In this document: one piece after another, positions 21,550 to 53,931 of the stretch | How the letters are laid out: the number at the start of each line of letters is the position of its first letter | Position numbering within the stretch: the stretch's first letter is position 1 | IMG/VR virus record: IMGVR_UViG_3300013093_000017 | Span: 165,676 to 229,675 of that record | Direction: 5' to 3' (one strand) | DNA: 64,000 nucleotides | Program-made: the position numbers and the translations under genes | Notes under the pieces: model-generated | The model's database searches: none | Told to the model about the DNA's origin: nothing | Seen by the model: only the letters and a program-made list of their open reading frames with translations

Positions 21550-21605
21550 ATTTGTTTATATCCTTATGACATATTTAGCAATAAATAATATACCTACTTA
21601 ATTGG

Positions 21606-21635
21606 TTGACATTCTGTTAATCAAACTGTTATACT
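21606..21635 (+). promoter_or_regulatory. Sigma70-type promoter upstream of gp55
   Basis: TTGACA (21606-11), 18-nt spacer, TG-extended TATACT (21630-35), then AAGGAG RBS. Confidence 0.75.
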
Positions 21636-21658
21636 TAACAAAAGGAGTTTCGCGCCAC

Positions 21659-22573
21659 ATGACAATAACAATAACACCAACTGGCCGCAAAGTAAAATAT
21701 CTTAATAATAGAGACTTACTAGCAGAAATACATAAAAGTAAATGTACATACAGTAGTTTTACACTTCCGGAATACAAGCAACACGACATTATTCTAACAA
21801 ATCTTGATAAAATCAATATCAGGACTATCGCAGATGCCAAACGAGCCCGTGCTAAACGCATGGGGTTAGAAGCATTTATGAATGCCCGCATTGCAGGTGA
21901 TAAGAAAATCAAATTAGGAGAGTGTACGCCAGACTATACCACTATTCCTAAGACAGATATTGTTATCCGCATCATGACATTCGATCATATTCCGCTCTCT
22001 CCGGGCAGAAAAAAAACAACCAAAACAGTAGCAGACGCACACGAAAAAGTTAATTTTCCTCCATTCCAACATTGGAAGTTTAACGAGAACGATGAACTCA
22101 TTTGTGTGGCAAAAAGCCATTGGAAAGGCCCTGTAGATACAGGATACTTTAGTAAAGACCATGGTCGTATTACAGAAAATCTAGGCAAGATGTATATTAA
22201 ACTGTCAGAGCGTTACGCACAGCGTAGTAACTGGCGTGGCTACACCTACATTGATGAAATGAAGGGACAGGCTATTCTACAATTAAGTCAAATTGGTCTA
22301 CAGTTTGATGAGTCGAAATCAGAAAATCCATTTGCCTACTACACCGCAGCAGTCACTAACAGCTTTACTCGTGTGCTGAACATAGAGAAGAAGAGCCAAA
22401 ATATCCGTGACGACCTATTAGAAACAGCAGGACTTACTCCAAGTATGACACGTCAGAATCAAACAGAATTTGCTGACGAGATTGCCCGTCAAGCTGAGAT
22501 TTACAAGAACTTACGCATGCCAAAGAGTCAATCGGGCGACTTTACCGAAGATGATTCAGAGGAAAGTGCTTGA
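21659..22573 (+). CDS. gp55: Late-transcription sigma factor, T4 gp55-like
   Basis: KYLNNRDLL N-terminus; NWRGYTYIDEM and FDESKSENPFAYYT motifs; upstream of gp47/gp46 as in T4-like phages. Start ATG 21659 follows AAGGAG. Confidence 0.85.
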   Translation: MTITITPTGRKVKYLNNRDLLAEIHKSKCTYSSFTLPEYKQHDIILTNLDKINIRTIADAKRARAKRMGLEAFMNARIAGDKKIKLGECTPDYTTIPKTDIVIRIMTFDHIPLSPGRKKTTKTVADAHEKVNFPPFQHWKFNENDELICVAKSHWKGPVDTGYFSKDHGRITENLGKMYIKLSERYAQRSNWRGYTYIDEMKGQAILQLSQIGLQFDESKSENPFAYYTAAVTNSFTRVLNIEKKSQNIRDDLLETAGLTPSMTRQNQTEFADEIARQAEIYKNLRMPKSQSGDFTEDDSEESA

Positions 22574-26321: not shown

Positions 26322-26330
26322 TAGATTGTT

Positions 26331-26338
26331 TATAAATA
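26331..26338 (+). promoter_or_regulatory. T4-type late promoter TATAAATA (representative of a recurring TAAATA motif)
   Basis: TAAATA core recurs at gene starts. Plus strand: 21582, 23648, 28501, 31631, 35905, 36254, 40315, 41656, 42156, 43283, 43818, 46000. Minus strand: 14549-54, 15025-30, 21572-77, 31655-62. Confidence 0.8.
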
Positions 26339-26346
26339 CATATATA

Positions 26347-27141
26347 ATGTCAAACACTGTTACTTCTTTTGTCTATTGGATACATCTGCAATCGCATCAA
26401 GATATGCTGCTACAAGGATACATTGGAGTTTCAATTAATCCAGAAATTCGATTAAATGATCACAAGAGCGAATCTACCAAATTAAATCCTATTAATCCTG
26501 TGTTAGCTAGTGCTTTTAAAAAATATTCAACTCAGATTATTCAAGATATTGTATTTACGGGGTCAAACACCGAATGTTATGCTTTTGAAGAGCGTATTCG
26601 CCCCACCCCACACATAGGATGGAATATCAATAAGGGCGGAGTATGCCCTCCTTCACAAAAAGGAAAGCATCGGTCGGCATTAACAAAAGAAAAAATAAAA
26701 AATAATAGCTTAAAGCAGGGAACAAATAGAACAATAGAGTATGTTAAAACCCATCAAGATGTTATTTACAAGGTGTTATCTATGATCTTAGAAAGAAATC
26801 GATGTGTTACTATTTTAAGAGAAACTGGAATAACTCGAGATTTATATAACAAAATTAAAAAAAAATATCTAACATATATTGAGTTATTAAACACCCATAC
26901 CGATTATACTTTAATAGCAGACCATATTAAAAAAACAAACGGAATGCAGCAAAAGGTATTTTCTGATAAAAAAGAGCTTTTAATAGAATTATATAGATTA
27001 ATAAATCTCAATATTAAACGAAAAATTATTCTATCTGAATTGGGCATCTCTCCTGCATTTTATGGGAGATTTAGAAACAAAGAGTTAGAATTTATATCGT
27101 ATTACAACTCACAATCTACTACCGGCGGTGATACACAATGA
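26347..27141 (+). CDS. GIY-YIG homing endonuclease with NUMOD3-like motif and tandem HTH-like C-terminus
   Basis: VYWIH...GYIGVS...RLNDH...E...GWNI, then KGKHRSALTKEKI. Start ATG 26347 lies 8 nt after a perfect TATAAATA. Confidence 0.75.
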   Translation: MSNTVTSFVYWIHLQSHQDMLLQGYIGVSINPEIRLNDHKSESTKLNPINPVLASAFKKYSTQIIQDIVFTGSNTECYAFEERIRPTPHIGWNINKGGVCPPSQKGKHRSALTKEKIKNNSLKQGTNRTIEYVKTHQDVIYKVLSMILERNRCVTILRETGITRDLYNKIKKKYLTYIELLNTHTDYTLIADHIKKTNGMQQKVFSDKKELLIELYRLINLNIKRKIILSELGISPAFYGRFRNKELEFISYYNSQSTTGGDTQ

Positions 27142-27583: not shown

Positions 27584-28030
27584 ATGTCTTGGACGTATCA
27601 AGGCATATTAGTCGAAACGCTACCTGAAGATTGTGTTGGTTATGTATATCTTATAACCTGCATACCTTCGGGGCGCAAGTATATTGGTAAGAAGCTGGCT
27701 AAGTTTGCAAAGACTTCTTACAAAACAGTAACATTAAAAAATGGTACTAAGAAAAAGAAAAAGATCCGCAGCAAGATTGACAGCGACTGGCAAGAATATT
27801 TTGGATCTAGTGTAGAGTTATCTGCTGATGTCTTAACATTAGGGGTTGACCAGTTCACTCGAGAAATATTATACTACTGTAAGTCAAAAGCAGAATGTAG
27901 CTATCTTGAAGCACGCGAACAGTTTGAAAGAAAAGTTTTAGAATCCTCTGATTATTACAATGGTATAATCAGTTGTAAGATACATCAATCACACATTAAA
28001 AATTTAGACACCAAGTCACACTCCTACTAG
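27584..28030 (+). CDS. Minimal GIY-YIG nuclease (catalytic domain only)
   Basis: GYVYLIT...RKYIGKK...YFGSS...FTREIL...YLE...YYN; Lys-rich insert; no C-terminal DNA-binding repeats. Confidence 0.8.
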   Translation: MSWTYQGILVETLPEDCVGYVYLITCIPSGRKYIGKKLAKFAKTSYKTVTLKNGTKKKKKIRSKIDSDWQEYFGSSVELSADVLTLGVDQFTREILYYCKSKAECSYLEAREQFERKVLESSDYYNGIISCKIHQSHIKNLDTKSHSY

Positions 28031-28534: not shown

Positions 28535-29287
28535 ATGAGAATCGAAGAATTATTAGCTGAACAACAATTAGATGAGTTAGGTTGGAAGAATGGTACTCCC
28601 ACAAATGATGATGGAACTCCTTTACCTAAGAGTGGTATTGCTCAGGGTGTAAACAAAGTAGCTGGTGGTATAGGTAAAGCTGTAGGAGGAGTTGCAGGTG
28701 CATGGCAAGCTGCTAAACAAGGATATCAAACAGGTAAAGCTGCTGTATCAGGGCAAGGATCAAATACTCCCACGCAACCTAATGCCCCTGCTGGTCAAGG
28801 ATCTAATGTAACTACTGGTAATCAAACCTCACAAGGTGATACCCAAACAGTTGGTACTACTAAAACTGTAGGACAAACACAAACAACTCCCCAACCTAAC
28901 ACTGCAACTGCGCCTAGTGCGCCTGCTGGTCAAGAACCTGCACCACCTGCTAATACAGCACAAGCTGATCAACAGGCTAAAGTTGGAGTAGGTCAAATCA
29001 ATAAGATTATTCCCGGATTACGTACTCGTGATCTACAAAGTCTTAAGAAAACTATTGATCAACGTATGCAAGCAATGAATAAAACTCCTAATCCTACTGG
29101 ACAACAAACTCCTAATCAAGGTAATCAAACAGTGACCGCTGCTAATACTGTAGCAAATGCACCTGCAGGACAACAATCTAATGTGGGTAAATTTTCTGGA
29201 CAACCGGCGAATGTAACACAAGGCAATCCGTTAGCAATGGCAGAAAGCGCAGAATTCTACAGCAAGTTCCTAGGAAAGAATATTTAA
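28535..29287 (+). CDS. Low-complexity putative head-internal protein
   Basis: MRIEELLAE N-terminus; Q/T/P/A-rich; TAAATA at 28501 and AGGA RBS. Confidence 0.6.
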   Translation: MRIEELLAEQQLDELGWKNGTPTNDDGTPLPKSGIAQGVNKVAGGIGKAVGGVAGAWQAAKQGYQTGKAAVSGQGSNTPTQPNAPAGQGSNVTTGNQTSQGDTQTVGTTKTVGQTQTTPQPNTATAPSAPAGQEPAPPANTAQADQQAKVGVGQINKIIPGLRTRDLQSLKKTIDQRMQAMNKTPNPTGQQTPNQGNQTVTAANTVANAPAGQQSNVGKFSGQPANVTQGNPLAMAESAEFYSKFLGKNI

Positions 29288-30529
29288 ATGAGAATGTCGC
29301 AAATTATCAGCGAGTCGTATCTATACGAAGGGTTAGATAACAGTGCTACTCACACTATGCGTCTATGGGAAAATGCCGGTCGTAAGATTGTAGAAGCAAA
29401 CTTAGACGCAGCAACTATTCAAAAAATATTCACAGCAGCAGAACAAGGTGCAAGTGCAGGTGGTGATAATCGTACCTTACTTGGCCTAGGTAAAGATGCT
29501 GCTACCGCTGTAAAATCAGCCTATGACGATCTAGTAAGCAAAGTACAAAATAGTGGCCCAATTAACGGCATTGATGCCAAATACGATCTGGCTGCTGAAA
29601 AATTAAAAGCTGCTACTGGTGGTGATCAAGGTGTGATGAAGTATGTACAAAAGTATAGAGACTTTGCTAAAGCACACCCTATTGCACAAAGTTTAATCTA
29701 TTCAGCATTAATAGCAGCCGCAGGTATTAGTGGTGCAGGAGCAGGTGGCGCAGCAGCACTAGGCTTGCTAAAAATGACCGACAAATTATTACAAGGTGAG
29801 AAATTTAGTACCTCAGTTGGTAAAGGTTTAGCCACAGGCGGTATGGCATTTGCAGCTAGTAAGTTAGGTGATCTAATCAAAGGAGTTAAACCTGGCGAAC
29901 AAGTTCCTCCACCAAGTGCAGGTGCAGCAGGTAATCCAAACTATTCTAAGCTCGATTTTGCTCATAACGATTATTATCTAAGTCCAAGAGGTGATATGAC
30001 GGTAGCAGTGCCTAAAGGATACGGTAGTCCTTGGCAAGAAGGAACAAAAGCGTTTGATATTCGCCAACAATTAGCAAATGCTAATTCAGCAAACGAAAGC
30101 ATCAATTTATCTAAAGATGCCCTTGCAGAAGTGTTTGCCGCAGTTACAGTTAATATGATTAACGAAGGATTGTGGGATGCTGTTAAATCTAAAGTAGGCC
30201 AAGCAGCAGATGCAGTAGCAAGTAAAGCACAGCAAGTTGGTCAAAACTTAACTAACAAAGTTACAGCAGACAAGCTAAACAGTGCATGGCAAGCAGCAGG
30301 ATCGCCTACCGATAGTGAACAGGTTAAACAGGTGTTAATCAATGCAGGTGTACCTGAAAATGTTGTTGCAGATGTTTATAAACAAATGAAGATTACTTCA
30401 GGTAACGATCGACCTAAATTAACTGTTAAACAGATTAATCAAATTATTCTTAAATTAAGATTAAGAGATTTACAAAGTCTACAAAAATTTGTTAATGCTG
30501 CATTACAACAGCGAACAAAAACTTCTTAG
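29288..30529 (+). CDS. Putative head-internal/ejected protein
   Basis: MRMSQIISE N-terminus; repeated (L/I/N)xEG sites; hydrophobic Ala/Gly segment; C-terminal motif shared with the upstream ORF. Confidence 0.55.
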   Translation: MRMSQIISESYLYEGLDNSATHTMRLWENAGRKIVEANLDAATIQKIFTAAEQGASAGGDNRTLLGLGKDAATAVKSAYDDLVSKVQNSGPINGIDAKYDLAAEKLKAATGGDQGVMKYVQKYRDFAKAHPIAQSLIYSALIAAAGISGAGAGGAAALGLLKMTDKLLQGEKFSTSVGKGLATGGMAFAASKLGDLIKGVKPGEQVPPPSAGAAGNPNYSKLDFAHNDYYLSPRGDMTVAVPKGYGSPWQEGTKAFDIRQQLANANSANESINLSKDALAEVFAAVTVNMINEGLWDAVKSKVGQAADAVASKAQQVGQNLTNKVTADKLNSAWQAAGSPTDSEQVKQVLINAGVPENVVADVYKQMKITSGNDRPKLTVKQINQIILKLRLRDLQSLQKFVNAALQQRTKTS

Positions 30530-30744
30530 AAGAACGGTAAACCACTTTCTTTAGTGGTTTCGAGATTGCTTTCGATTATCTTACTGATAGCTTCTCGATC
30601 TTGTAGGTCTAATTCGTAGGCTTCGGTTATAGTCACACCTCCCCGCATAAACCAGCATATTCTAAATAAATCTTCTTTAACGGCTCTTGTTTCGTTTTCC
30701 ATGTCCTTGACAAGCTGGTTGATCTCGTCAAGGGATAATAACAA
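30526..30744 (-). CDS. gp51-like baseplate/tail assembly chaperone, probably expressed as a -1 frameshift extension of the gp26-like gene
   Basis: CWFMRGGVTITEAYELDLQDRE resembles gp51/tail chaperone C-termini; TTG start with no clear RBS. Confidence 0.6.
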   Translation of the reverse strand: MLLSLDEINQLVKDMENETRAVKEDLFRICWFMRGGVTITEAYELDLQDREAISKIIESNLETTKESGLPFF

Positions 30745-30749
30745 AAGCC

Positions 30750-31616
30750 TTATGCGAAAAAATTTGATTGATCAAATATAATAGGAATTTCTATTTCCTC
30801 CGGAGAACCTGATGCAATCATATCATCTGTTGCACGGACCTTTATCGGTTTAATAGAGTTTTTTTCTCTTAAATTATCTAATCTGTCTTTAATGGTATTA
30901 AAAATCTCTCGGTCACACTGATCGAAAAACTCTTTAATAAAATCAGTATCAGTGACCTGCCCAGAAGCTGTATCAATCCTGTACACTGATGATGTTACAA
31001 TTCCTAACGTTACTTCAGTTAATTTATTAAAACTGTCTTTAAATAAATTTAGTTTTTCAGCTTCTGAAATAGTATCATCACTGACAATATTCATAATGCG
31101 TTGAGTTTCAAAAGTCTCTACTCCGGCCTTAGATATTTCTTGATAAGTTAACGGTCGTACATAAGCAACTATGTTATCTCCTACTGTGATTTGTTCTTCC
31201 CAGGTAATTGTATTATATAAATTATCTAATAATAATTGTAAATTAATTGAATAAGAAGCATCTTGCCCGAATACTGTTACTGTAGTCTCCATTTCTTCTC
31301 CGTAGGTAGCCATTCGAATTGCTATTAATAGTGCATCGAGATCTAAATTTGGAGTTTTCCAAGCATCTTTAATATTAGGAATACAACTTTCCAATACATT
31401 AACAACTGCCTGGCCATTAAGCAATGCATCGGGAGTCTTTAATATTAGTTCATCTTTAGCTGTCATAGAATATACCGGGTATTCTCCGTTAGTAGAAATT
31501 TCTAAACTCCCCTCAGGCCAATATTGTCCGTTGCTTGGTAATTTAACATAAATCTTAGGTTGTCTCATTAAACTAGCCAATGGATTTACTTTAGGTTGTT
31601 GTGATGGGTTTTGCAT
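30750..31616 (-). CDS. gp26: Baseplate hub assembly protein, gp26-like
   Basis: YVKLPSNG, MTAKDELIL, DLDALLIAIR...YGE and terminal NFF motifs. Confidence 0.75.
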   Translation of the reverse strand: MQNPSQQPKVNPLASLMRQPKIYVKLPSNGQYWPEGSLEISTNGEYPVYSMTAKDELILKTPDALLNGQAVVNVLESCIPNIKDAWKTPNLDLDALLIAIRMATYGEEMETTVTVFGQDASYSINLQLLLDNLYNTITWEEQITVGDNIVAYVRPLTYQEISKAGVETFETQRIMNIVSDDTISEAEKLNLFKDSFNKLTEVTLGIVTSSVYRIDTASGQVTDTDFIKEFFDQCDREIFNTIKDRLDNLREKNSIKPIKVRATDDMIASGSPEEIEIPIIFDQSNFFA

Positions 31617-31688
31617 ATATTATACTCCGATAAATAACTATTGTAACGTATCTTTATTTATATACATACATAACTCAAGGATTTAGCA

Positions 31689-34154
31689 ATGGCTAATGTA
31701 ACAGGACAAATTGGACAAGAATCGGTAGTATTAGAAAACGCAGCCACAGAAGCTACGCTAAAACTACTATTACAAGCAGCTCTAGCCACTACCAAAGCAC
31801 AAAAAGATGCGGTTAAAGATCTTGCTACTAAAGTAATCGGTGATCCTGCTAAAGTTGAAGAATTTAATCAAGAGGTAAGTAAATCCGGAGGAGTTATAAG
31901 AACTACTGCTGGAGCTTTTGGCGGGCTTACTGCGGCTGGACAACAACTACAAGTTGGGTTTAACAAAACTGTTGACGTTGTAAGCAAATTAGTATCAGGA
32001 ACAAACCAAGCAAGTGATGTGTTTGGTGCTATGAAAAATTTACCTCTCGGTATAGGATTAGTAGCCTCTGGATTTGAAATATTAGCAAAATATCAAGAAC
32101 AACAATTAAAAGCATATCAATCGATGTCATCAGCAGGAGTAAACTTTGGTGGCAGCTTAAATGCAATGAAACTAGCTAGTTTAGAGTATGGAATGACCAT
32201 GGAACAATTCTCTAATGTGATGAAAGAGAATGGTAAAGCATTTGCATTAATGGGCCCAACAGTTGAAGCTGGAAAAAATCAATTCTTAAAAATGAATAAG
32301 GAATTGATTAACGGTGATATAGGATTACAATTAAAAAATCTAGGATTAACCGCTGAGGATATATCAAACGGATTTGCAGGATTTATACAAATGCAAGGTG
32401 GGTTAGGTGCTACTCAGATTAAAGATCAAAAAGCATTAGAAGAATCATTTCATAATTATACAAACGAATTAGATATGATGACTCGATTAACAGGTGAAAC
32501 AAGAAAAGAACAACAAGATGCACAAGCCCAACTTAAAAATGATGCAGTCTTCCAAAATGAATTAAGCAAACTAGTTGCCTCTGGAAAAATAAACGAGGCA
32601 AATCAACTTAAATTCTTAGGTGAACAAGCTAAAATAAAAGGTGCCGGAGCTTTTGATAATCTCATCGGCACGTTAACCAATACTCAACCAGTGACTGCTG
32701 CAGGAAGAGCATGGGCAGGGGTTCAGAGTGAACAAACTAGGTTACAAGGGGAATCTGTTAAATTAGCTCTTGAAGGAAAATTAAATAGTCAACAAGCAGT
32801 TAAAAGCCAGTTAGAACAACAGGCTGCGATGGCAAAAACAACTACTGCGTTCGGAGCATCAGCTTCGGTAAACGCTAGAATGAATAATGAATACACAGAA
32901 GCGATGACTGCTGGGTTAAAAGCCGAATCAAATGTTAGATTGAAAGGGCTTAATACCCAAGAAGGTATAAACGCTGCAATGGTTGCGGCACAAAAAGAAC
33001 AAGAAGATATTGCAAAAAAAGCCACAGAAGTTAAAGCCGCTAATGAACGACAAGAGGAAATGGCAAAACTATCTCAACATATAATGGAAACTTTAATCCC
33101 TATCATTAATCAAGCATTACCTCAAATGAACAAATTTATTCAAGGATTTAGTGATGCAGTAAGTTGGATGAGTAAGAATGCTAATACATTAAAGTTGATA
33201 GGTGAATCTTTATTAGCAGCGTATGTTACTGCTAAAGCAGTTCAAGGAGCAAAAGCCGCATATGGAGTCGGATCTAAAGTAGCAGAATTTATTGGAGGTG
33301 GTAAAGGTGCCGCAGGAGTAGCAGAAGGAGCAATATCAAAAGGACCGTTAGCCGCAGTTGAAGGCGCAGCAGGTGGTGGCGGAGGTATAGCAGGATTTAT
33401 ACGCAGCATGGGTATGGCATTAGCAGCACTTGGTCCCGAGGCTCCGTTAATTGCAGCCGGTGCAGCCGCAGTTGGAGCAGCTATAACATTAATCGGCGCA
33501 GGCATTGCAGGTGCAACATGGTTAATGGGCAAAGCATTACCGTCACTAGCCTCAGGATTAAAAGCGTTTGGAGATATTGACGGAGTTAATTTAATCAAAG
33601 TAGGCGCAGGAATTGCAGCACTTGGATTAGGATTAGGAGCATTCGGTGCAGGCAGTGCATTAGCCGGTGCAGGCGGAGTAATTGAAGGATTAACATCTGG
33701 ACTTGGTAAGTTATTTGGTGCTAAGAGTCCTATTGACAAGATTAAAGAATATGCTGCATTAGGTCCAAGTTTAGAAAAATCTGGTATAGGTATAATGAAA
33801 TTTAACACAGGATTAGCACAACTACTAGCCACCGATACAGGTAAAATTTACAAAGTTGCCGCAGCAATGGCTCAGCTAAAAAATAGTATACCACAAGAAA
33901 GTTTCAGTGATAGAGCCGCAAATCTGTTGACTGGGTTAGTAACAAAAGCTATTGAGCCTGCAGCCGCTACCGCTACCGCTACTACTGCTGCAACAGGAGC
34001 AGCAGGCACAATTGATGAAAATAATTTAGTCGCTCAGGTACAACGGTTAAATAGCATATCTGTAGAAATGCTTAAACATATAAAAGACACCGCAGATCAA
34101 GCGAAGAAAAATGTTGAAGCAACAAAAGCTCTTAATAGAAATGTTTGGGCATAA
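31689..34154 (+). CDS. Tail tape measure protein (gp29-like)
   Basis: 821 aa, helical and A/G/Q/K-rich, with hydrophobic Gly/Ala stretches; next to the gp26/gp51-like pair. Confidence 0.65.
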   Translation: MANVTGQIGQESVVLENAATEATLKLLLQAALATTKAQKDAVKDLATKVIGDPAKVEEFNQEVSKSGGVIRTTAGAFGGLTAAGQQLQVGFNKTVDVVSKLVSGTNQASDVFGAMKNLPLGIGLVASGFEILAKYQEQQLKAYQSMSSAGVNFGGSLNAMKLASLEYGMTMEQFSNVMKENGKAFALMGPTVEAGKNQFLKMNKELINGDIGLQLKNLGLTAEDISNGFAGFIQMQGGLGATQIKDQKALEESFHNYTNELDMMTRLTGETRKEQQDAQAQLKNDAVFQNELSKLVASGKINEANQLKFLGEQAKIKGAGAFDNLIGTLTNTQPVTAAGRAWAGVQSEQTRLQGESVKLALEGKLNSQQAVKSQLEQQAAMAKTTTAFGASASVNARMNNEYTEAMTAGLKAESNVRLKGLNTQEGINAAMVAAQKEQEDIAKKATEVKAANERQEEMAKLSQHIMETLIPIINQALPQMNKFIQGFSDAVSWMSKNANTLKLIGESLLAAYVTAKAVQGAKAAYGVGSKVAEFIGGGKGAAGVAEGAISKGPLAAVEGAAGGGGGIAGFIRSMGMALAALGPEAPLIAAGAAAVGAAITLIGAGIAGATWLMGKALPSLASGLKAFGDIDGVNLIKVGAGIAALGLGLGAFGAGSALAGAGGVIEGLTSGLGKLFGAKSPIDKIKEYAALGPSLEKSGIGIMKFNTGLAQLLATDTGKIYKVAAAMAQLKNSIPQESFSDRAANLLTGLVTKAIEPAAATATATTAATGAAGTIDENNLVAQVQRLNSISVEMLKHIKDTADQAKKNVEATKALNRNVWA

Positions 34155-34170
34155 TAAAGGAATATATTAG

Positions 34171-35904
34171 ATGTCATGGAAACGTTATTTTACTCCGGTA
34201 GCCACTGGATCACAAAGCGCAATTAGCGGCGCTAACCGAGCAAACCCAACTCGCTCTAATTACTCAAGCTATTTGCCAGATGTTTACAGCGGTCATCCGA
34301 ACAGACTAGAACGCTACAGCCAATACGATACTATGGACATGGATCCAGAAGTAAATGCGGCTTTTGATATTCTTGCTGAATTCTGTACACAGGTAAATGA
34401 AGAAAATCAAACTCCATTTCATGTATTCTTTAAAGAACAAGCAACTCCTACAGAAATTAAGATTATTAAGAAGTACTTACAACAGTGGACTAAACTAAAC
34501 AAGTTTGGTAATAGAATCTTTAAAGTCATACGTAACACATTCAAATACGGTGACTGTTTCTTTATCCGTGATCCAGAAACACAAGCATGGATGTATATTG
34601 ATCCAAGTAAGATTGACAAAATTATTGTTAATGAAAGTGAAGGTAAGAAACCAGAACAGTATGTTGTTCGTGACCTAAACATTAACTTTCAAAATCTAAC
34701 GGTCACACAGATCAACCCAAGTAATCAAAATGCTACACCAGGTGGTACTGCTTATGTAACAGGCGGCGTACACCAACGAGGTATGGTGGGTGCTTATCCA
34801 CAAAGCTCAGGTAGTCGTTTTGCTATTAATCAAAACCAATGGGCAATTGATGCAGAACACGTTATTCACCTATCATTAAGCGAAGGACTAGATAACAATT
34901 TCCCATTTGGTAACAGCCTAATGGAAACGATTTTCAAAGTTTATAAACAAAAAGAATTGCTTGAAGATGCTATTATTATCTACCGTGTACAACGTGCGCC
35001 AGAACGTCGTGTGTTCTATATTGACGTAGGTAATATGCCCAGCCACTTGGCCATGAGCTTTGTTGAGCGTGTTAAGAACGAAGTAAATCAAAGACGTATT
35101 CCAAGCGTAACAGGCGGCGGCCAAAGTGTTATTGATGCAGGATATAATCCACTTTCGATCAACGAAGATTACTTCTTTCCACAAACAGCAGAAGGCCGTG
35201 GATCAAAAGTTGACATTCTACCAGGCGGTACTAATCTAGGTGAGATCAGCGATTTGCTATTCTTTACACAAAAACTAATGCGTGCCCTACGTATACCAAG
35301 TAGCTACTTGCCTACCGGTACAGATGACAGCGCAGCACAATTTAGCGACGGCCGTGTTGGTACAGCATACATTCAAGAGCTACGCTTTAACAAATACTGC
35401 GAACGCTTACAAAGCCTAGTTAATGAACAATTTGATATAGAATTTAAAGATTACCTATTTAAGAAAGGTATGAATATTGATCCTAATCTGTTTGATCTTA
35501 AATTCAATCCTCCACAAAACTTTGCTGCTTATCGCCAAGCGGAAATGGATACAGCACGTATTCAAAACTACGCAGGTCTAGCAGAAGTGCCATTTATGAG
35601 CAAACGCTTTGCACTTAAACGCTTCTTAGGATTATCACAAGAAGAGATTGCAGAAAATGAACAAATGTGGCGTGAAGAGAATGTTGATAGTGAAACTAAC
35701 CTAAGCGCACAAGCAGAAATGCGTTCAATGGGGGTTACCAGCGCAGGCCTAAGCAACGATGCAGAAACACTTGGTTCTAGCGATACAGGTCCAGAAGATC
35801 TACAAATGGACGGTATGCCAGAAGGTCCTTCAAGCAGTGTGCCTAATACTCCAGCAACTCCAGCAGCTGGTGGCGGTGCAGGTGGCGGTGCAGGTGGAAT
35901 GTGA
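34171..35904 (+). CDS. gp20: Portal protein
   Basis: LLEDAIIIYRVQRAPERRVFYIDVGNMP, EDYFFP and LPGG motifs. Confidence 0.95.
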   Translation: MSWKRYFTPVATGSQSAISGANRANPTRSNYSSYLPDVYSGHPNRLERYSQYDTMDMDPEVNAAFDILAEFCTQVNEENQTPFHVFFKEQATPTEIKIIKKYLQQWTKLNKFGNRIFKVIRNTFKYGDCFFIRDPETQAWMYIDPSKIDKIIVNESEGKKPEQYVVRDLNINFQNLTVTQINPSNQNATPGGTAYVTGGVHQRGMVGAYPQSSGSRFAINQNQWAIDAEHVIHLSLSEGLDNNFPFGNSLMETIFKVYKQKELLEDAIIIYRVQRAPERRVFYIDVGNMPSHLAMSFVERVKNEVNQRRIPSVTGGGQSVIDAGYNPLSINEDYFFPQTAEGRGSKVDILPGGTNLGEISDLLFFTQKLMRALRIPSSYLPTGTDDSAAQFSDGRVGTAYIQELRFNKYCERLQSLVNEQFDIEFKDYLFKKGMNIDPNLFDLKFNPPQNFAAYRQAEMDTARIQNYAGLAEVPFMSKRFALKRFLGLSQEEIAENEQMWREENVDSETNLSAQAEMRSMGVTSAGLSNDAETLGSSDTGPEDLQMDGMPEGPSSSVPNTPATPAAGGGAGGGAGGM

Positions 35905-40325: not shown

Positions 40326-41102
40326 ATGAACAAATACGAAAAATGGTATAATAATATAGTAGCAATGGGCTTAATAGATCGCCCTAATATGCGCACTGCC
40401 CGGCACCACATCATTCCTGAGAGTTTTTTCAAGAATAGAACACGTAAAGGCCCCCCTGGGTGGTTAGATGGTAATCCTGATGATCCATCTAACCTCACAT
40501 TTCTTACAGGAAGGGAACACTTTATATGCCACTGGCTATTGACTAAGATTTATAGCGGAGAAGCTAAAGCCAAGATGATATATGCATTACGGATGATGAG
40601 AGCAGGAGAATACTATACAAAAATAACTGCAAGAGTATATTCTAATATAAAAGAAGAATATTCTAAAATTGCTAGTACCGCTGTTTCTGGAGAAAATAAT
40701 CCTATGTGGGGTAAAACACACACCGAAGAAACAAAAGATAAAATACGGCAAGCAAACCTAGGTAATCAAATAAATGAAGAACAGCGTAAAAAGATAAGTG
40801 ACAGCAAGTTAGGCAGAAAGCGTTCGCCATTTAGTGATGAGTGGATAGCAAATATAAAAGCGGCAAGGCAAGGTGAATTAAATGGTATGTATGGAAAAAA
40901 TCACTCAGAAGAAACTAGAAAGAAACAAAGCGAAAAAGCCAAAGGCAGAAAATATAGTGCAGATGTAGTTGAAAAACGTGCTGCAAAGATTAGAGGTAGT
41001 AAAAGAGAAAAACTTCTCTGCCCGCACTGTAATAAAGATGTAGCAGTAAATGGATATGCAAGATGGCACGGCGACAATTGTAAACTTAAAGGACCTAAAT
41101 AA
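40326..41102 (+). CDS. HNH homing endonuclease with NUMOD3 repeats
   Basis: HHIIP...NLTFLTGREHFICH; NPMWGKTHTEETKDKI and GMYGKNHSEETRKK repeats; C-terminal CPHC...RWHGDNCK. Confidence 0.85.
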   Translation: MNKYEKWYNNIVAMGLIDRPNMRTARHHIIPESFFKNRTRKGPPGWLDGNPDDPSNLTFLTGREHFICHWLLTKIYSGEAKAKMIYALRMMRAGEYYTKITARVYSNIKEEYSKIASTAVSGENNPMWGKTHTEETKDKIRQANLGNQINEEQRKKISDSKLGRKRSPFSDEWIANIKAARQGELNGMYGKNHSEETRKKQSEKAKGRKYSADVVEKRAAKIRGSKREKLLCPHCNKDVAVNGYARWHGDNCKLKGPK

Positions 41103-46099: not shown

Positions 46100-49000
46100 A
46101 TGGCCATAGGTCGCATTTCCGGTCCGCTGCTATCGAAAAACCTGTTACGTGACGGGGTTGATCTAGCATTTGAAACCGATTTATTATATCTCGACGTTAC
46201 AGACGGTCGCATCGGCATACGAAAAAGTAATCCAGCCTACGAGTTAGACGTCAACGGAACCATCAACGCAAACAATCTTCGAGTAACTTACACAGGTCCC
46301 GGCACAGGATCAGCAACACTTGGTAAGTTAACAATTAACTCAGGAACAATTTCAACTACTGTTGGTCCAGTAACAATTCAACCTAGCGGCAATGATAAGA
46401 TTAACCTAGTCGGTGACACAACCGTTACAGGAAACTTACACGCAACTGGCAATATTACATCAGATGGCGATATTACCATTGGTGATAACGCAAATATTGA
46501 TAATGTTGTATTCAATGCTGAAATTAAATCAAACATTATTCCGGCGGCCACCGGCCTATACACATTAGGTAATGAGAATAATTCTTGGGCAACTACCTAT
46601 GCCGACACAGTGGTTGCTAACGCATTATCTAGTCGTGGCAATATTGAAATCACCCCACATGGCGGTTTATTAGAAATCAACAGTGACATTCGCGTTAGTG
46701 GTAAGAATCCAATCGGTACTGCTCCGGTGGTTACCAACGTATTGTATGTAACAATGGACGGTAACGATACTAACGATGGCCGAGCACAAGATCCAAGTCG
46801 TGCATGTAAGACAATTAGTGGCGCTGTTCGTAGTCCTTACTATCGTCCGGGAACATTAATTCGTGTATCTAGCGGACACTATTACGAAAACAATCCAATT
46901 TTAATGCAGCCTAACACTGCTATCATCGGTGATGACTTACGTACAACTAGTATTGAGCCGATTAACAAAACACAAGATTTATTTCACGTACAATCTGGTT
47001 GCTATCTAGCACAGATGCAGTTCTTAAATGGCCGCAGTGGATTATTACCTGGTCCTTATGTTCCTGGAACTAACCGCGGCGCATTTGCTGTGGCATTTCC
47101 TCCAAGCGTAAACGGCAAAAAGTTAGATGTATATCAATCACCATATATACAAAACTGTACTAACCAAAGCGGTCCTTGGTTAATTGATGGTACTGTGTTT
47201 GTTCCTAACCAAACTATACAAGTTCCTACAGGAGTAGGAATGACACAATTTGAAGCCAACACTAACACAATTACTGTAACAGTGTCAGAAGGTGTAATTA
47301 AATTAGGCGACAACGTTATCAGCGGTCCGCAAGATCCTGGCTTCTTTAACGCAAGAACATTGTTGTTGGCAAACATACCATTTATAGAAGATCAAGCTAT
47401 AACATACATTAATGACCTAGTGCTGACTGCAACTAATACTAATGATATCGGAAATCCATTCTATAATTTTAAATATGAGCAATCTAAATGGTCACGAGAT
47501 TTAGGACTTATCATTCAAAACATTGCTTACGATGCTACATTTGGTGGTAACCAAAAGAGTGTCGAATCTGGCTTAGCCTACTACAACGGTGTTGTCAACC
47601 TAATCGAAGGTCAACAGACACAATTTACCACAGCAATTAATTACGTTAACACCTTAAGCCAAGCTATCATACAAAATATAGCGGTTACTCCTGTAAGTAC
47701 TGCTACAACACAGGTAATTAATACAGCATTAGTAAATGGCGTAATTGCCTCAGACGAGATCAATGCTGGTATCAGCATTATTACAAATATTATCAACAAC
47801 GGTCCTGGTGTTGCTCCGGCTGTGTTTAATAGTTGCGGCCCAGAAAATCCAAGCGTTAGCGCAGAAATATTATTACAAGCAAATAGAACATTCTTACAAG
47901 AAGAAGTAACTGCGTATGTAGACGCACAGTATCCAACCTTTGAATACAAAAAAGACTATTGCTACCGAGATGTTGGCTTGATCGTAGATGCGGTTAGCCA
48001 AGACATAATTGTAGGTGGCAACACAAAATCAATCGAAGCCGCATTAAGTTACTTCACAGGCAGCAAAGGAGATAGCAGCGTAGCTGAGCAGGCAATTACT
48101 AGCAACATTGAATTAATCAAAAATATTATCGTAAACGGTTCTGCTACAGCACCTACTCCTATATCAGGACCAAACCAAGGCACCGGATTTAGCAATGCCG
48201 CTGACCTACTAACTAAGAATAAATTATTCCTACAATCTGAAATCAGTGCGTATGTACGCACTATTATTACCTTAACTCCACAACAAGAAGCATTATGTTA
48301 TAGAGACCTTGGGCTAATTGTTGATGCTCTATCTGCTGACACAGGAGCAGGCGGCAATGTAAACAGCATCTATGCTGCCTTACAATATTTCAGCGGTATG
48401 ACTAACATCTTACCTAGCAATGAAATTACTCCATTAGCACAGGCGTTGGATTACATGGTTACCTTGTGTGCAAATATTGTTAAGAATACACAAAATACTA
48501 ATCTATATCAAAAATTAATTTCTCAAGTAATATCATTACCTGTGGCATCATTAGCAGAATACAATAGTGCCGCAGCTAATATAGATTTAATAACAGATAT
48601 TATCACAGTTGGCCCAAGTGCTGCTCCAACTGATGTGCCAATTAGTCTATCAATGTCAACTGCTACCACAGCATATAACGCATTTAGAATACTAACAGAA
48701 AATAAAGATTTCTTATCAGCAGAAGTAACTGGATATATTGACAGTGTATTTGGCGGCGGCTTTAACTACAATACAGGAACATGTTTTAGAGATACGGGAC
48801 TTATTGTAGACAGTCTAGCATTTGACCTATTATACCAAGGTAACACACAGGCTATATTTGCAGGTTCACAGTATTATAACCAAAGTACCTACACTGGTCA
48901 AATTGGTCGCGAACTAACCACAACCACTAATGCTATTAAGTATGCTAAGATGTTAGCAGAATTAGTAGCGGTTAATTCGACTGTGACTAATTTACAAGCA

Positions 49001-52000
49001 GTATCTACACAGACATTTGATCTATCTAATCCGGGATCAGATATTTCAACAGCAACGATTGAACAATTATTCAACACTGTTACTAATATATTAACTAATG
49101 GCACTGTGGGAATTACTAATCAAATAATTTCAAATAGTACAGCTTCTAGCGACCTTGGAATTATTAATGCATTTACTCTTGTACAGGCAAATAAACAGTT
49201 TATTGAAGACGAAGTAATAGCCTATGTTGATAGTCTTAATCCGTCATTTGTCTACGATCAAGTTAAATGTTCTAGAGATACTGGCTTAATTGTTAAAGCA
49301 CTAGCACAAGATTTAATGTTTAGTGGGAACAGTCAAAGTACATTTGCAGGATTACAATATTGGAATCAAAATGGTTACGTTGGCGCTATTTCAAATGAAT
49401 TAACCACTACAACCAATGCAATTACCTATATTAGAGATCTAGCAATTAAAGTAATAACATTAGATACTAGCGGAACACGCTATCAAACAGCCGTAGGTCA
49501 ATGGACCACAGGCACAGCCGCTACTATAGCTGAAACACAATCAGTTTATGACGACTTTAATCTAATCCTTGACATTATTACCAACGGAACAGCTAATGTA
49601 ACTGATAGAATTGTTTCTAATAGCCTAACTACCAGCACTAATGCTAATGTATTAAATGCTTATGCCTTATTAGAAGAGAATAAAGCATATTTACAAGCAG
49701 AAGCCATTGCTTTTGTTGAAGCCAGCAAGGCATTTGGCTTTGTTTATGATCCAGGTAAATGCAGTCGCGATATAGGTTACATGGTTGATAGCATTTCATT
49801 CGACTTATTATACGGTGGAAATAGACAGGCTATTCAAAGCGGTGTTTATTATTACGGCTTCTCCAATACTGCTACGCAAGTGCCAAATGAACAGGCACAG
49901 GTAAGTGCTGCCTACGATTATATTAAGACTCTAGCTTCATATATTGTTACTGGACAGCGTGTTCCTACACAATATCAAAGTATTGTTCCGCAGATTATTT
50001 CTGCAACTACAGGCACAGGATATCAAGCATCTTTAATTAACACTAACATTGATACTATTGTTAGCATTGTAAATGGTGGACCTACACTAGCAGGAACTCC
50101 GAGTCCGATATCATTAACTACATCGGGTGATATACACGATATTAATGCAGCAATGTTGTTAGATGCCAACATGGCGTTTATTCAAGCGGAAGTAATTGCG
50201 TATATTAACTATCTATATCCTACAGGATTTACCTACGATAGAACCAAATGTCGTAGAGATGTTGGTTATATTTTAGATTGTGTATGTTTTGATTTATTAA
50301 ACGGCGGTAATAGACAAAGTATTCAAGCAGGTGTATATTATTATGGATTTAACACATCATCTAGTGTATTAACCTACGAAATAGCACAGATAACGGCTGC
50401 GTACAATCATATCAAAACAATTGCTAACAATATTGTACAAAATATTCCAATAACTCCGACCTCTGGAAATACATATTCACAGGTCACATTAGGATCTACT
50501 GCTACTATTGCTGAAGCTGAATACATTGCCAGCGACATTGATATTATCACTGATATTATTAACACAGGTGATATTGATTTCTATCCTAAGACACCTATTA
50601 GTTTAACCGCAAGTGTTGATGCTAATATAGTTGCTACCTACGATCTACTATTAGCCAACAGAGAATTCATACAAAATGAATTAATTGCCTACATCAATTA
50701 TTATTTCGTTCAACCATTTGTGTATAATAAAGAAAAATGCGCACGTGATACTAAACTAATTGTTGATTCTATTGCACTTGACATATTATACGAAGGTAGT
50801 TCACAAAGTTCATTTGCTGCATTACAATATTGGAACCAATCTGGATACACCGGAGCGATTGCTAGTGAATTAACAACTACAACTAATGCTATAATCTATG
50901 CTAAAGGTCTAGTACAATCATACATTGTTACTCCAGATGAAAGTGATCAAGTTGGACATTTATTCGATACTATTGTAAATGTTATTACACAAGTGACCAC
51001 AGGCACTACTGATTTAATAGTTCCTAATGGTTTACCATCACCGGTTGTCTCAGTAAATAATGCTTATGCCGCAATTATAGCAAATAAGAGCGTGATACAA
51101 CAACAAACAGTTGATTATGTAAATGCTACTAACCCAGGTTTCGTTTATAATACATCAACCTGCTATAGAGATGTTGGCTACATTATAGATTGTGTGGCAT
51201 TTGACCTATTACACACTGGAAATAGACAAAGTATTCAAGCAGGAGTTTATTATTTCAGCTTTAACGGAACATCTAACCTAGTTGATACAGTCAGTGGCAA
51301 TCCTGAAATCCCACAATCTACTGCGGCCTACACCTATTTGAAATATCTAATGAAACAGGTGTTATTAAACAATCCAATAACACGCAGTTATCAAGTAGTT
51401 TATCCTCAGGTAATTATTCCAGCATATATGGGAATGGCCACTGTTATTCCTGGCGAACAAAATATTACAGTTGATGCTATTCACTATCTAAACGATTTAA
51501 GTTTAAATGTAATTAGTAATACTTCTGTACCTGTGGTACGTTCATCAACTGCACAGACTATGTACCCTAATTTTGAAGGCGGTGCTTATGCAGGTCCGGG
51601 TATAACTAGAAATTACAATACCATTGCCGATATTATTCAAAATGGACCAAATGTAGCACCAGTACCGTTTGCTGGCAGTGGATTATTTGCTACCACAGGT
51701 GTTAGTTCAGACGATGTACGACAAAGTCCAACAGTTATTGCCCTATCTACAGTGACAACTGGCACATATTTGGTAACATTGTCGGGGTCAACTGTAGGTG
51801 ATTCGCAAAACGGTACATTGTATTTTGGTAAAACTGAGGTTTATCCAGCACAAGATGCAGATGTACCCGACGAATGGGCACAACGTCGCGTTGATGTATT
51901 AGGTTCTATGGGCGGTGCACTGGTAGATGGTGCTGTAGTAAGTGCTCGTTCACCGATTCAGTCATTCGTATTTGACGCATATACTCAGGTTAACCAAGGC

Positions 52001-53535: not shown

Positions 53536-53931
53536 ATGGCATTAATACCATTAAACACGTTTAAAACAAAAACAGCGATATTACAAGGTGATTGGACCTA
53601 CGGAACAACCGCCACGGTATATACAGCACCAATTGGCGTTACATCAATTATATTAATGACACAGGTAGCTAATGTTAGCACACAGACTCATACAGTTACA
53701 TTTGCTCATTCAAGAAATTTTCCAATATTTGCCGATGCACAAGGTAATGGAGCTCAACCAGCAGGTGTAGTTACTGAATTGATACAACAATTTGCTATTC
53801 CGACTAATGATGCGGCTAGTCTAACCACTGGTAAAATGATTATTGAAAGTCTTGACAGTGTAATTTGTTATGCAGATGCAGATGGTGTAATGAAATTAAC
53901 TATGAGTATCTTGGAGACAGCTAATGCCTAG
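53536..53931 (+). CDS. Small virion structural protein
   Basis: TVYTAPIGVTSIILMTQVAN motif; GAGGA RBS. Confidence 0.6.
   Translation: MALIPLNTFKTKTAILQGDWTYGTTATVYTAPIGVTSIILMTQVANVSTQTHTVTFAHSRNFPIFADAQGNGAQPAGVVTELIQQFAIPTNDAASLTTGKMIIESLDSVICYADADGVMKLTMSILETANA

Follow-up and report, generated by a model that had tools for sequence, protein, structure and literature searches.

Organization of the gp26-like locus

We examined a 64,000-nt stretch of DNA (hereafter, the window) from a freshwater jumbo phage, corresponding to positions 165,676 to 229,675 of IMG/VR record IMGVR_UViG_3300013093_000017. Within the window, a gene of the T4 gp26-like family ends next to a second open reading frame (ORF) that lies in its -1 frame, and a large gene is transcribed divergently from it. 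The features at this locus are as follows.

31616-30750, minus strand: gp26-like baseplate hub assembly gene in the 0 frame, encoding a 288-aa short product and ending at stop TAA 30752-30750
30762-30756, minus strand: slippery heptamer U UUU UUC in X XXY YYZ register with the 0 frame, placing Phe-Phe in the P and A sites
30755-30750, minus strand: 6-nt spacer GCAUAA between the heptamer and the predicted stem, containing the 0-frame stop codon
30749-30740, minus strand: 5′ arm (GGCUUUUGUU) of the predicted frameshift-stimulating stem
30733-30705, minus strand: inner 10-bp hairpin inside the loop of the long stem, predicted from the single-sequence fold only
30691-30682, minus strand: 3′ arm (AACAAGAGCC) of the predicted long-range stem
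30762-30526, minus strand: -1-frame reading from the heptamer to stop TAA 30528-30526, encoding the 76-aa C-terminal extension of the inferred 363-aa long product; the ORF starting with TTG at 30744 (30744-30526, 72 codons) is its downstream part
31689-34154, plus strand: divergent 821-aa neighbor, the probable tape measure protein
34171-35904: portal gene following the 821-aa neighbor

A preliminary description of this locus, made from the sequence alone, had noted that the gp26-like gene ends TCA AAT TTT TTC GCA TAA, with two overlapping heptamers (A AAT TTT and T TTT TTC) followed by an open -1 frame, and had proposed a -1 frameshift fusing the gene to a gp51-like ORF beside the tape measure gene, as a T4-superfamily counterpart of lambda G/GT. 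We confirmed what it observed. Both heptamers (A AAT TTT at 30765-30759 and T TTT TTC at 30762-30756) are in register with the 0 frame, the -1 frame reads F F R I R L and runs without a stop into the 72-codon ORF, and a tandem slip would give 287 + 76 = 363 aa, as had been computed. The statement that the TTG start has no recognizable RBS is roughly right; AAGG sits only 3 nt before the TTG and is part of the 5′ arm of the stem. However, TTTTTTC on its own is not unusual in the window (13 copies against 15.8 expected), so the single-sequence observation is at chance level and the comparative data carry the significance. Contigs from two independent freshwater samples span the T-run with no insertion or deletion.

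The gp26-like identity of the 288-aa product was supported by both profile and structure comparisons. It matched PF12322 at 42 bits against a curated cut-off of 24.5 (E 1.1e-10) and phrog_150 (“baseplate hub”) at E 8e-15. Its AF2 model (pLDDT 89.5) matched models annotated as “baseplate hub assembly protein, T4-like” in BFVD by Foldseek at E 3.6e-21 and TM 0.84–0.86, with 57 matches at E<=1e-3. No solved structure exists for comparison, and neither Foldseek against the PDB nor the VIA wide search found anything beyond generic helical hairpins.

Conservation of the heptamer and of the -1 frame

To determine whether the arrangement is maintained by selection, we compared 57 distinct homologous junctions drawn from 82 loci, with protein identities of 36–53% for the metagenomic loci and 24–33% for Atu_ph07, Phosso and Xoo-sp13. 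The heptamer was kept in register with the 0 frame in 57 of 57 junctions, as T TTT TTC in 56 and as T TTT TTT in one, and was also present in four further cultured phages that we read separately (CBB, GAP32, Serratia BF and Cassandra). In contrast, the A AAT TTT heptamer was not conserved, and we rejected it as part of the signal. The codon supplying the first T was AAT, AGT, GAT, CAT or GCT (N, S, D, H or A) and never the C-ending synonym, whereas elsewhere in the same genes the T-ending forms run at 0.48–0.66 and TTT at 0.77, pointing to selection on the nucleotide beyond what the protein sequence requires. The position of the 0-frame stop varied among relatives (1, 3, 4 or 10 codons after the heptamer), while that of the heptamer did not. 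Part of the conservation of the run may nonetheless reflect the Phe-Phe motif that it encodes, which T4 gp26 also has.

We next examined the downstream frame. The downstream ORF was always in the -1 frame, and it was open from the heptamer and close to 78 codons long (77–81) in 56 of 57 distinct loci; in the other, the contig ends first. It is conserved as protein from the first codon after the slip (FFRxRLLTL…), including upstream of the TTG, and the third-position excess in codon-position variability moves from the 0 frame to the -1 frame exactly at the heptamer. At least five distinct loci have no ATG, GTG or TTG before codon 38, and at least twelve have none in the first 30 codons. Thus conservation of the T-run, openness of the -1 frame, coding-like conservation upstream of the TTG and the lack of a conserved independent start, which had been set out beforehand as comparative tests, each came out in favor of a frameshift.

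The AF2 model of the extension is helical (pLDDT 91.9). By fold, the extension matched only small uncharacterized viral ORFs, and Pfam and PHROG searches gave nothing significant. The suggestion that the 72-aa ORF is gp51-like was rejected: a profile comparison (hhalign) with T4 gp51 gave 5% probability, and a profile of the extension found nothing anywhere in the T4 genome. T4 gp51 is 249 aa, and its gene is transcribed divergently from gene 26, which is instead followed by gene 25; beyond being a hub-assembly factor encoded near gene 26, gp51 shares nothing with the ORF described here.

A predicted RNA stem downstream of the heptamer

We then asked whether an RNA structure accompanies the heptamer. 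Both the MFE and centroid folds of the window sequence (dG -24.6 kcal/mol, z -3.96) contained a stem that begins 6 nt downstream and pairs 30749-30740 with 30691-30682, closing a loop of about 50 nt, and RNAalifold predicted the same stem on 15 relatives. In this register 87% of cells were paired and 5 of 12 pairs showed compensatory changes, compared with 24–59% paired in slid controls. In other sub-clades the 3′ partner sits at a different distance while the 5′ arm remains fixed 6–7 nt after the heptamer; in a second register 84% of cells were paired and 6 of 10 pairs were compensatory, and a third register was also seen. Predicted stems were weak in the Rak2-like phages (z about 0 to -1.8).

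In-frame fusions and a two-gene clade

About 20 cluster representatives of 319–351 aa, from a sister clade, carry a gp26-like body with the same extension domain fused in frame at their C-terminus. In 5 of 5 loci examined in this clade, the fused gene is preceded by a second gp26-like gene that lacks the extension, so that a separate short and a separate long protein are provided. In these short genes, where the -1 ORF is absent, the slippery run is lost in 2 of 5, although the other three still carry T TTT TTY. In the tree, the short paralogue clade is nested inside the frameshifting clade (97/98 and 100/100 support).

The divergent neighbor

The gp26-like gene had been described as adjacent to the tape measure gene, and we examined the 821-aa neighbor more closely. 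It is present next to the gp26-like gene, in the same divergent arrangement, in 56 related loci examined, as well as in Phosso, Cassandra and the Rak2-like phages. Searches for a tape-measure model were negative or gave only sub-threshold hints with Pfam, PHROG, NCBIfam and a PDB profile search; PF25671 was absent from the phage's record, hhalign to T4 gp29 gave 1%, and tblastn of the 821-aa protein against phages found no match. The case for its being the tape measure is therefore circumstantial, resting on its variable length (673–968 aa among complete copies, with 14–26% identity), its homology to the virion protein GAP32_244 at 98.9%, the occurrence of VanY, M15 or lysozyme domains in some members, protein Atlas feature hits, and the annotation of the RaK2 homologue as similar to a tape measure. 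A complex prediction of the gp26-like protein with residues 1–700 of this neighbor scored 0.00, which we do not take as evidence either way, and a search for a tube gene (PF06841, gp19) found none in the record, which is 65% complete.

Interpretation as a probable programmed -1 frameshift

Taken together, these data are best explained by a programmed -1 ribosomal frameshift at the 3′ end of a gp26-like baseplate hub assembly gene, and we hold this reading with high confidence. In this model, most ribosomes would read AAU UUU UUC GCA UAA and terminate, giving the 288-aa form, while a fraction would be held up by the downstream stem and slip back one base with tRNA-Phe in both the P and A sites (UUU to UUU, UUC to UUU). 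These ribosomes would continue through CGC AUA AGG CUU UUG to 30526, giving a 363-aa form with the same body plus a 76-aa helical C-terminal domain. What the comparative sequence analysis establishes is that the signal and the coding of the -1 frame are conserved, that the two parts form one polypeptide elsewhere, and that one lineage provides a separate short and a separate long protein. In contrast, the production of the trans-frame protein and the assignment of the shift to the ribosome rather than to transcription are inferred from sequence, as is any function of the two forms, including binding to the tape measure or tube proteins. The interpretation in the preliminary description was thus partly supported, in that it was right about the frameshift and the gp26-like label, but the gp51-like label was not supported, and the tape measure assignment and the link to G/GT remain unproven.

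We considered whether the downstream ORF could instead be a separate small gene, translated from the TTG at 30744 or by termination-reinitiation at the gp26 stop to yield a free protein of 58–75 aa, with the T-run simply encoding a conserved Phe-Phe. AAGG precedes the TTG, GenBank and gene callers annotate a separate ORF, T4 gp26 also ends …EFFELL, seven of 57 junctions (Atu_ph07, Phosso and five metagenomic) have an ATG overlapping the stop (ATGA), and about 17, including the window, have an in-frame TTG six codons after the heptamer start, so that some independent or coupled initiation is possible in those genomes. Nevertheless, no start position is conserved, the copy in Cassandra contains no Met, the residues before every candidate start are conserved as protein, and the Shine-Dalgarno-like sequence is not maintained, with AGG replaced by CGC or AAG in some clades. 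Together with the invariant third base of the preceding codon across five amino acids and the in-frame fusions in the sister clade, this makes a separate gene unlikely.

We regard it as similarly unlikely that RNA polymerase slips on the run of six T and adds one U to a fraction of mRNAs, although the site is a homopolymer whose length is what is strictly conserved, and on present evidence this is not directly excluded. Six residues is short for efficient slippage by bacterial or phage polymerases, the run always sits in exact X XXY YYZ register and is followed by C (apart from the one T TTT TTT junction), and the stem with covariation 6 nt downstream has the classic geometry of ribosomal -1 stimulators and no known role in polymerase slippage. 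Finally, an artefact, whether a homopolymer sequencing or assembly error splitting one ordinary gene or a chance heptamer beside an unrelated ORF, could draw only on the chance-level frequency of TTTTTTC in the window, and is refuted by the recurrence of the arrangement in 57 distinct metagenomic and isolate junctions and in about 89 phage records, and by the agreement of contigs from independent samples.

Comparison with known systems

The site resembles canonical bacterial -1 signals (E. coli dnaX, the IS3/IS911 family) in having an X XXY YYZ heptamer of the H_HH.U_UU.Y class, whose motifs are among the most efficient in E. coli (PMC4066793), a spacer of about 6 nt and a downstream RNA structure. 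It differs in that the predicted stimulator is a long-range stem whose 3′ partner has moved between at least three registers during evolution.

T4 gp26, listed as a hub assembly chaperone (PMC3004832), belongs to the same Pfam family and predicted fold class, has a Phe-Phe motif near its C-terminus and lies in a similar late baseplate and hub gene context. However, T4 reads GAG TTC TTT, which is not slippery, and has no extension domain anywhere in its genome. Gene 26 overlaps gene 25 through TAATG and has an annotated internal product, 26′, and the T4 tape measure gp29 lies three genes away and is not detectably related to the neighbor described here.

As with lambda G/GT and the conserved -1 frameshift of tail assembly chaperones (TACs) in long-tailed phages (Levin, 1993; Xu, Hendrix and Duda, 2004; as cited in PMC5009743), a -1 slip near the 3′ end of a tail-assembly gene would yield a major short product and a minor C-terminally extended one with the same N-terminal body, beside a probable tape measure gene. 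We found no sequence or fold membership in TAC families: there were no Pfam TAC, PHROG TAC or Phage_tail_T hits, and HK97 TAC 2ob9 appeared only at rank 49 (Foldseek E 1.1). The body is 288 aa rather than about 140, the gene is divergent from the probable tape measure gene rather than immediately upstream of it and co-oriented, no tube gene is adjacent, and the heptamer is U UUU UUC rather than G GGA AAG. The link to G/GT therefore remains a functional analogy.

Implications for gp26-like proteins and jumbo phages

We found no report or annotation of this frameshift, and literature searches for a frameshift in gp26, baseplate hub, RaK2 or PA5oct found nothing relevant. The frameshift adds a deeply conserved recoding event, very likely but inferred from sequence, to a gene present in about ninety sequenced jumbo phages, including RaK2, CBB, GAP32, PA5oct and Atu_ph07. 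In the records examined here (RaK2, Cassandra and Atu_ph07) the extension domain is unannotated or truncated, with no annotated ORF there at all in Cassandra and RaK2, and elsewhere it is filed as a small hypothetical ORF; annotations and virion or infected-cell proteomes of these phages should be re-read with the 363-aa-type product in mind. The site is also a clean example of a predicted stimulatory stem whose 3′ partner has moved while its 5′ arm stayed fixed.

As for function, we suggest only tentatively, and with less than even confidence, that the two forms act together in hub and tail-tube assembly with the neighboring probable tape measure protein, in the manner of lambda G/GT. In a more specific version of this idea, which is likewise possible rather than probable, the short and long proteins would be the long-missing functional equivalent of the G/GT pair in T4-related jumbo myoviruses: the gp26 body would hold the tape measure protein in the hub, the helical extension would recruit the tube or tube-initiator proteins, the frameshift efficiency would set the stoichiometry, and T4 itself would have lost the extension. 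This would give T4 gp26, whose function is still unclear, a concrete role, and would show that the solution of making two forms by -1 frameshift next to the tape measure arose in an unrelated fold.

Programmed -1 frameshifting in tail genes is regarded as a hallmark of the G/GT chaperone family, to which the T4 group is reported to be an exception (Xu et al., 2004). Here the same strategy appears in the unrelated gp26 family, beside the probable tape measure gene, and one lineage has replaced the frameshift with a duplicated gene pair, which is natural evidence that both forms are required. Together, these observations give a testable handle on what gp26 does.

Identification of a slippery heptamer at the end of a gp26-like gene

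We first examined the minus strand, where a 288-aa ORF ending TCA AAT TTT TTC GCA TAA is followed by a shorter ORF in the -1 frame. The features concerned are as follows.

31616-30750, minus strand: 288-aa gp26-like ORF (0 frame)
30762-30756, minus strand: T TTT TTC, in X XXY YYZ register
30744-30526, minus strand: 72-codon ORF starting with TTG, in the -1 frame

From the heptamer onward the -1 frame reads FFRIRLLLL..., and a TGA closes this frame only four codons upstream of the heptamer, so that a tandem slip would give a product of 287 + 76 = 363 aa. The arrangement given in the preliminary description was therefore accurate. On its own, however, this observation is not significant, since TTTTTTC occurs 13 times in the window against 15.8 expected. 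Contigs from two other freshwater samples cover the run with no indel, so it is not an assembly slip.

To identify the genes involved, we compared the upstream ORF with family models, and found that it belongs to the T4 gp26 family, scoring 42 bits on PF12322 against a cut-off of 24.5 and matching phrog_150. Its AF2 model (pLDDT 89.5) matched predicted “baseplate hub assembly protein, T4-like” structures at E 3.6e-21, but had no relative among the solved structures searched. The window is part of a 230-260-kb uncultured freshwater phage contig, of which the nearest isolates are Agrobacterium phage Atu_ph07 and Sinorhizobium phage Phosso, at about 32% identity. Its gene order matches that of Rak2-like jumbo phages such as GAP32: gp47, gp46, ..., extension, gp26-like, then divergently a large protein, portal, protease and major head protein. 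We also observed the following features in the window.

31655-31662, minus strand: TATAAATA, the T4 late-promoter consensus, found only twice in the window against 11 expected, with one copy 39 nt upstream of the gp26-like ATG
21602-22573: gene for a gp55-like late sigma factor
26326-27141, 27584-28030 and 40326-41102, plus strand: three GIY-YIG/SegE-like homing endonuclease ORFs, inserted between conserved replication and structural genes and interrupting the gene order that otherwise matches Rak2-like phages
28535-29287 and 29288-30529, plus strand: two ORFs (250 and 413 aa) with no family match that converge on the extension ORF, the stop codon of the second overlapping the stop of the extension at 30526-30529
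46100-53524 and 53924-58576, plus strand: two very large ORFs (2474 and 1550 aa) downstream of the head genes

Conservation of the heptamer and the -1 frame

To test whether the junction is conserved in relatives, as the preliminary description had proposed, we collected 80 loci from viral contigs (36-53% identity) and seven isolates, and compared the 57 distinct junctions. Fifty-six of these have T TTT TTC and one has T TTT TTT, always in 0-frame register. The codon that supplies the first T is AAT (37), AGT (11), GAT (5), CAT (2) or GCT (2), so that the amino acid changes but the third base never does, while elsewhere in the same genes these T-ending codons are used at only 0.48-0.66, and TTT at 0.77. 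The 0-frame stop, in contrast, moves between 1, 3, 4 and 10 codons after the heptamer.

The downstream ORF is always in the -1 frame, and is open from the heptamer and close to 78 codons long (77-81) in 56 of 57 junctions; in the remaining locus the contig ends first. It is conserved as protein from the first codon after the slip, with consensus FFRxRLLTL...CWYMRGG...NLETTKKSGLPFF. Five distinct loci have no ATG, GTG or TTG before codon 38, and at least twelve have none in the first 30 codons. Analysis of codon-position variability showed that the highest entropy falls at position 3 of the 0 frame upstream and at position 3 of the -1 frame downstream, with the switch happening at the heptamer.

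We next examined cultured jumbo phages, and found the same arrangement in CBB, GAP32, Serratia BF and the PA5oct-like Cassandra. The extension profile finds the domain in Cassandra (E 5e-7) and GAP32 (E 3.6e-5), starting at the heptamer. The extension is unannotated in Cassandra (locus L087, 2331-2555) and RaK2 (locus L099, about 1501-1720), neither of which has any ORF annotated there, and is annotated only as a truncated 40-aa ORF in Atu_ph07 (locus L001, 2980-3213). By tblastn, 74 phage records carry the Rak2-type extension and 11 carry the PA5oct type, in addition to four hits with the window's own type. PA5oct-type phages share an identical 75-aa extension that contains no Met.

A predicted RNA stem downstream of the heptamer

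The window's RNA is predicted to fold into a 10-bp stem that starts 6 nt after the heptamer and encloses a second hairpin (dG -24.6 kcal/mol, z -3.96), with the following arms.

30749-30740, minus strand: 5′ arm
30691-30682, minus strand: 3′ arm

RNAalifold found the same stem in 15 relatives, including Atu_ph07, in which 87% of cells are paired and 5 of 12 pairs have double changes, against 24-59% paired when the partner is slid. A second sub-clade keeps the 5′ arm in place but pairs it with a partner about 20 nt closer (84% of cells paired, 6 of 10 pairs compensatory), and a third uses GCCUCC/GGAGGC. In an MFE survey, the first paired base lay 0-7 nt after the heptamer in 55 of 57 sequences, although the Rak2-like stems are weak. 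A fixed 5′ arm at stimulator distance with a wandering 3′ partner argues for selection on structure at that position. In addition, U_UU.U_UU.C belongs to the class of heptamers found most efficient in E. coli (PMC4066793).

A clade encoding short and long forms as two genes

A full HMM search with the extension profile gave 512 hits, most of which are small stand-alone gene calls. Some gene callers start the small ORF upstream of the heptamer in the -1 frame (hit P0001 and similar hits of 89-98 aa), for example at an ATG 15 codons before FFR; these products overlap the gp26-like gene and look like call artefacts that hide the frameshift. About 20 of the top 150 cluster representatives, however, are 319-351 aa with the extension at their C-terminus, with gp26-like N-terminal parts and a junction that reads ...F R..IL in a single frame. 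In all five loci examined (Logan assemblies L094-L098), this fused gene is immediately preceded by a second gp26-like gene of 294-330 aa that lacks the extension, and this lineage therefore encodes the short and long forms as two tandem genes.

This clade provided a natural control for the frameshift signal. In its short genes the -1 frame closes at once or carries no homologue of the extension, and the slippery run is lost in 2 of 5 (TCT TTC ATT and TCC TTT ATG). The other three still carry T TTT TTY with no usable -1 ORF, possibly as a relic of the frameshift site. In a maximum-likelihood tree, the short paralogues form one clade (100/100) nested inside the frameshifting clade that holds the window (97/98), while the bodies of the fused paralogues form a separate clade on a long branch (98/98). 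The simplest reading, although the rooting is not secure because T4 sits on a very long branch, is that the frameshift is older, and that a duplication later split the two products between two genes.

The divergent neighbour and the comparison with G/GT

A large ORF is divergently adjacent in 56 related loci examined, and also in Phosso, Cassandra and the Rak2-like phages, but not in Atu_ph07. Among complete copies it is 673-968 aa, and identity is only 14-26%. This protein is homologous to GAP32_244, a virion structural protein, at 98.9% hhalign probability, the only region conserved with GAP32_244 being residues 91-277, and the CBB homologue was found in virions by mass spectrometry (PMC5259590). 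A few homologues of the 821-aa neighbour (family A8) carry peptidoglycan-hydrolase domains, namely VanY or M15 in two members and a phage lysozyme in one, as tape measure proteins often do. The RaK2 homologue is annotated as similar to an enterococcal phage tape measure, and the only named look-alikes in the protein Atlas are tape-measure families, though these matches serve as a lead only. No tape-measure model was matched, however, and we found no similarity to T4 gp29, so that the tape measure identity is probable but not shown.

We also asked whether this locus is related to lambda G/GT, as the preliminary description had inferred. Neither the gp26-like body nor the extension resembles any tail assembly chaperone family or fold in the searches made, and the complex prediction for the gp26-like protein and its neighbour gave no answer. 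The proposed gp51-like identity of the downstream ORF was not upheld, since the extension is unrelated to gp51, and in T4 it is gene 25 that follows gene 26. T4 gp26 keeps the Phe-Phe motif but with TTC TTT, and T4 has no extension domain. Leiman et al. list gp26 as a hub assembly chaperone (PMC3004832), which fits a chaperone-like reading but does not prove it. The earlier interpretation was thus supported in part, holding for the frameshift but not for the gp51-like label, with the G/GT relationship remaining an analogy.

Interpretation

We considered other explanations for this arrangement. Separate translation of the small ORF cannot be the general mechanism, given the absence of early start codons in several loci and the conservation of the heptamer and of the -1 frame from the first codon after the slip, but it may add to the frameshift where an ATGA overlap exists. 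Transcriptional slippage is not excluded on present evidence, which includes no RNA data, though it explains neither the register nor the downstream stem. An artefact is excluded.

The comparative analysis shows that the heptamer, its register and the coding of the -1 frame are conserved, and that one lineage encodes the two forms separately, whereas the production of the long protein by ribosomal rather than transcriptional slippage is inferred from these patterns. That the pair works like G/GT is a reasonable inference by analogy, which we hold only tentatively, and the locus is not a member of the G/GT family by any test applied here. We found no report of this frameshift in the literature searched, and no frameshift annotation in the records examined. 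We conclude that, on comparative evidence, a programmed -1 ribosomal frameshift at 30762-30756 is very likely. Its mechanism is canonical, while the gene family, the genomic setting and the two-gene alternative are new, and it is ancient within a large group of gp26-bearing jumbo phages.
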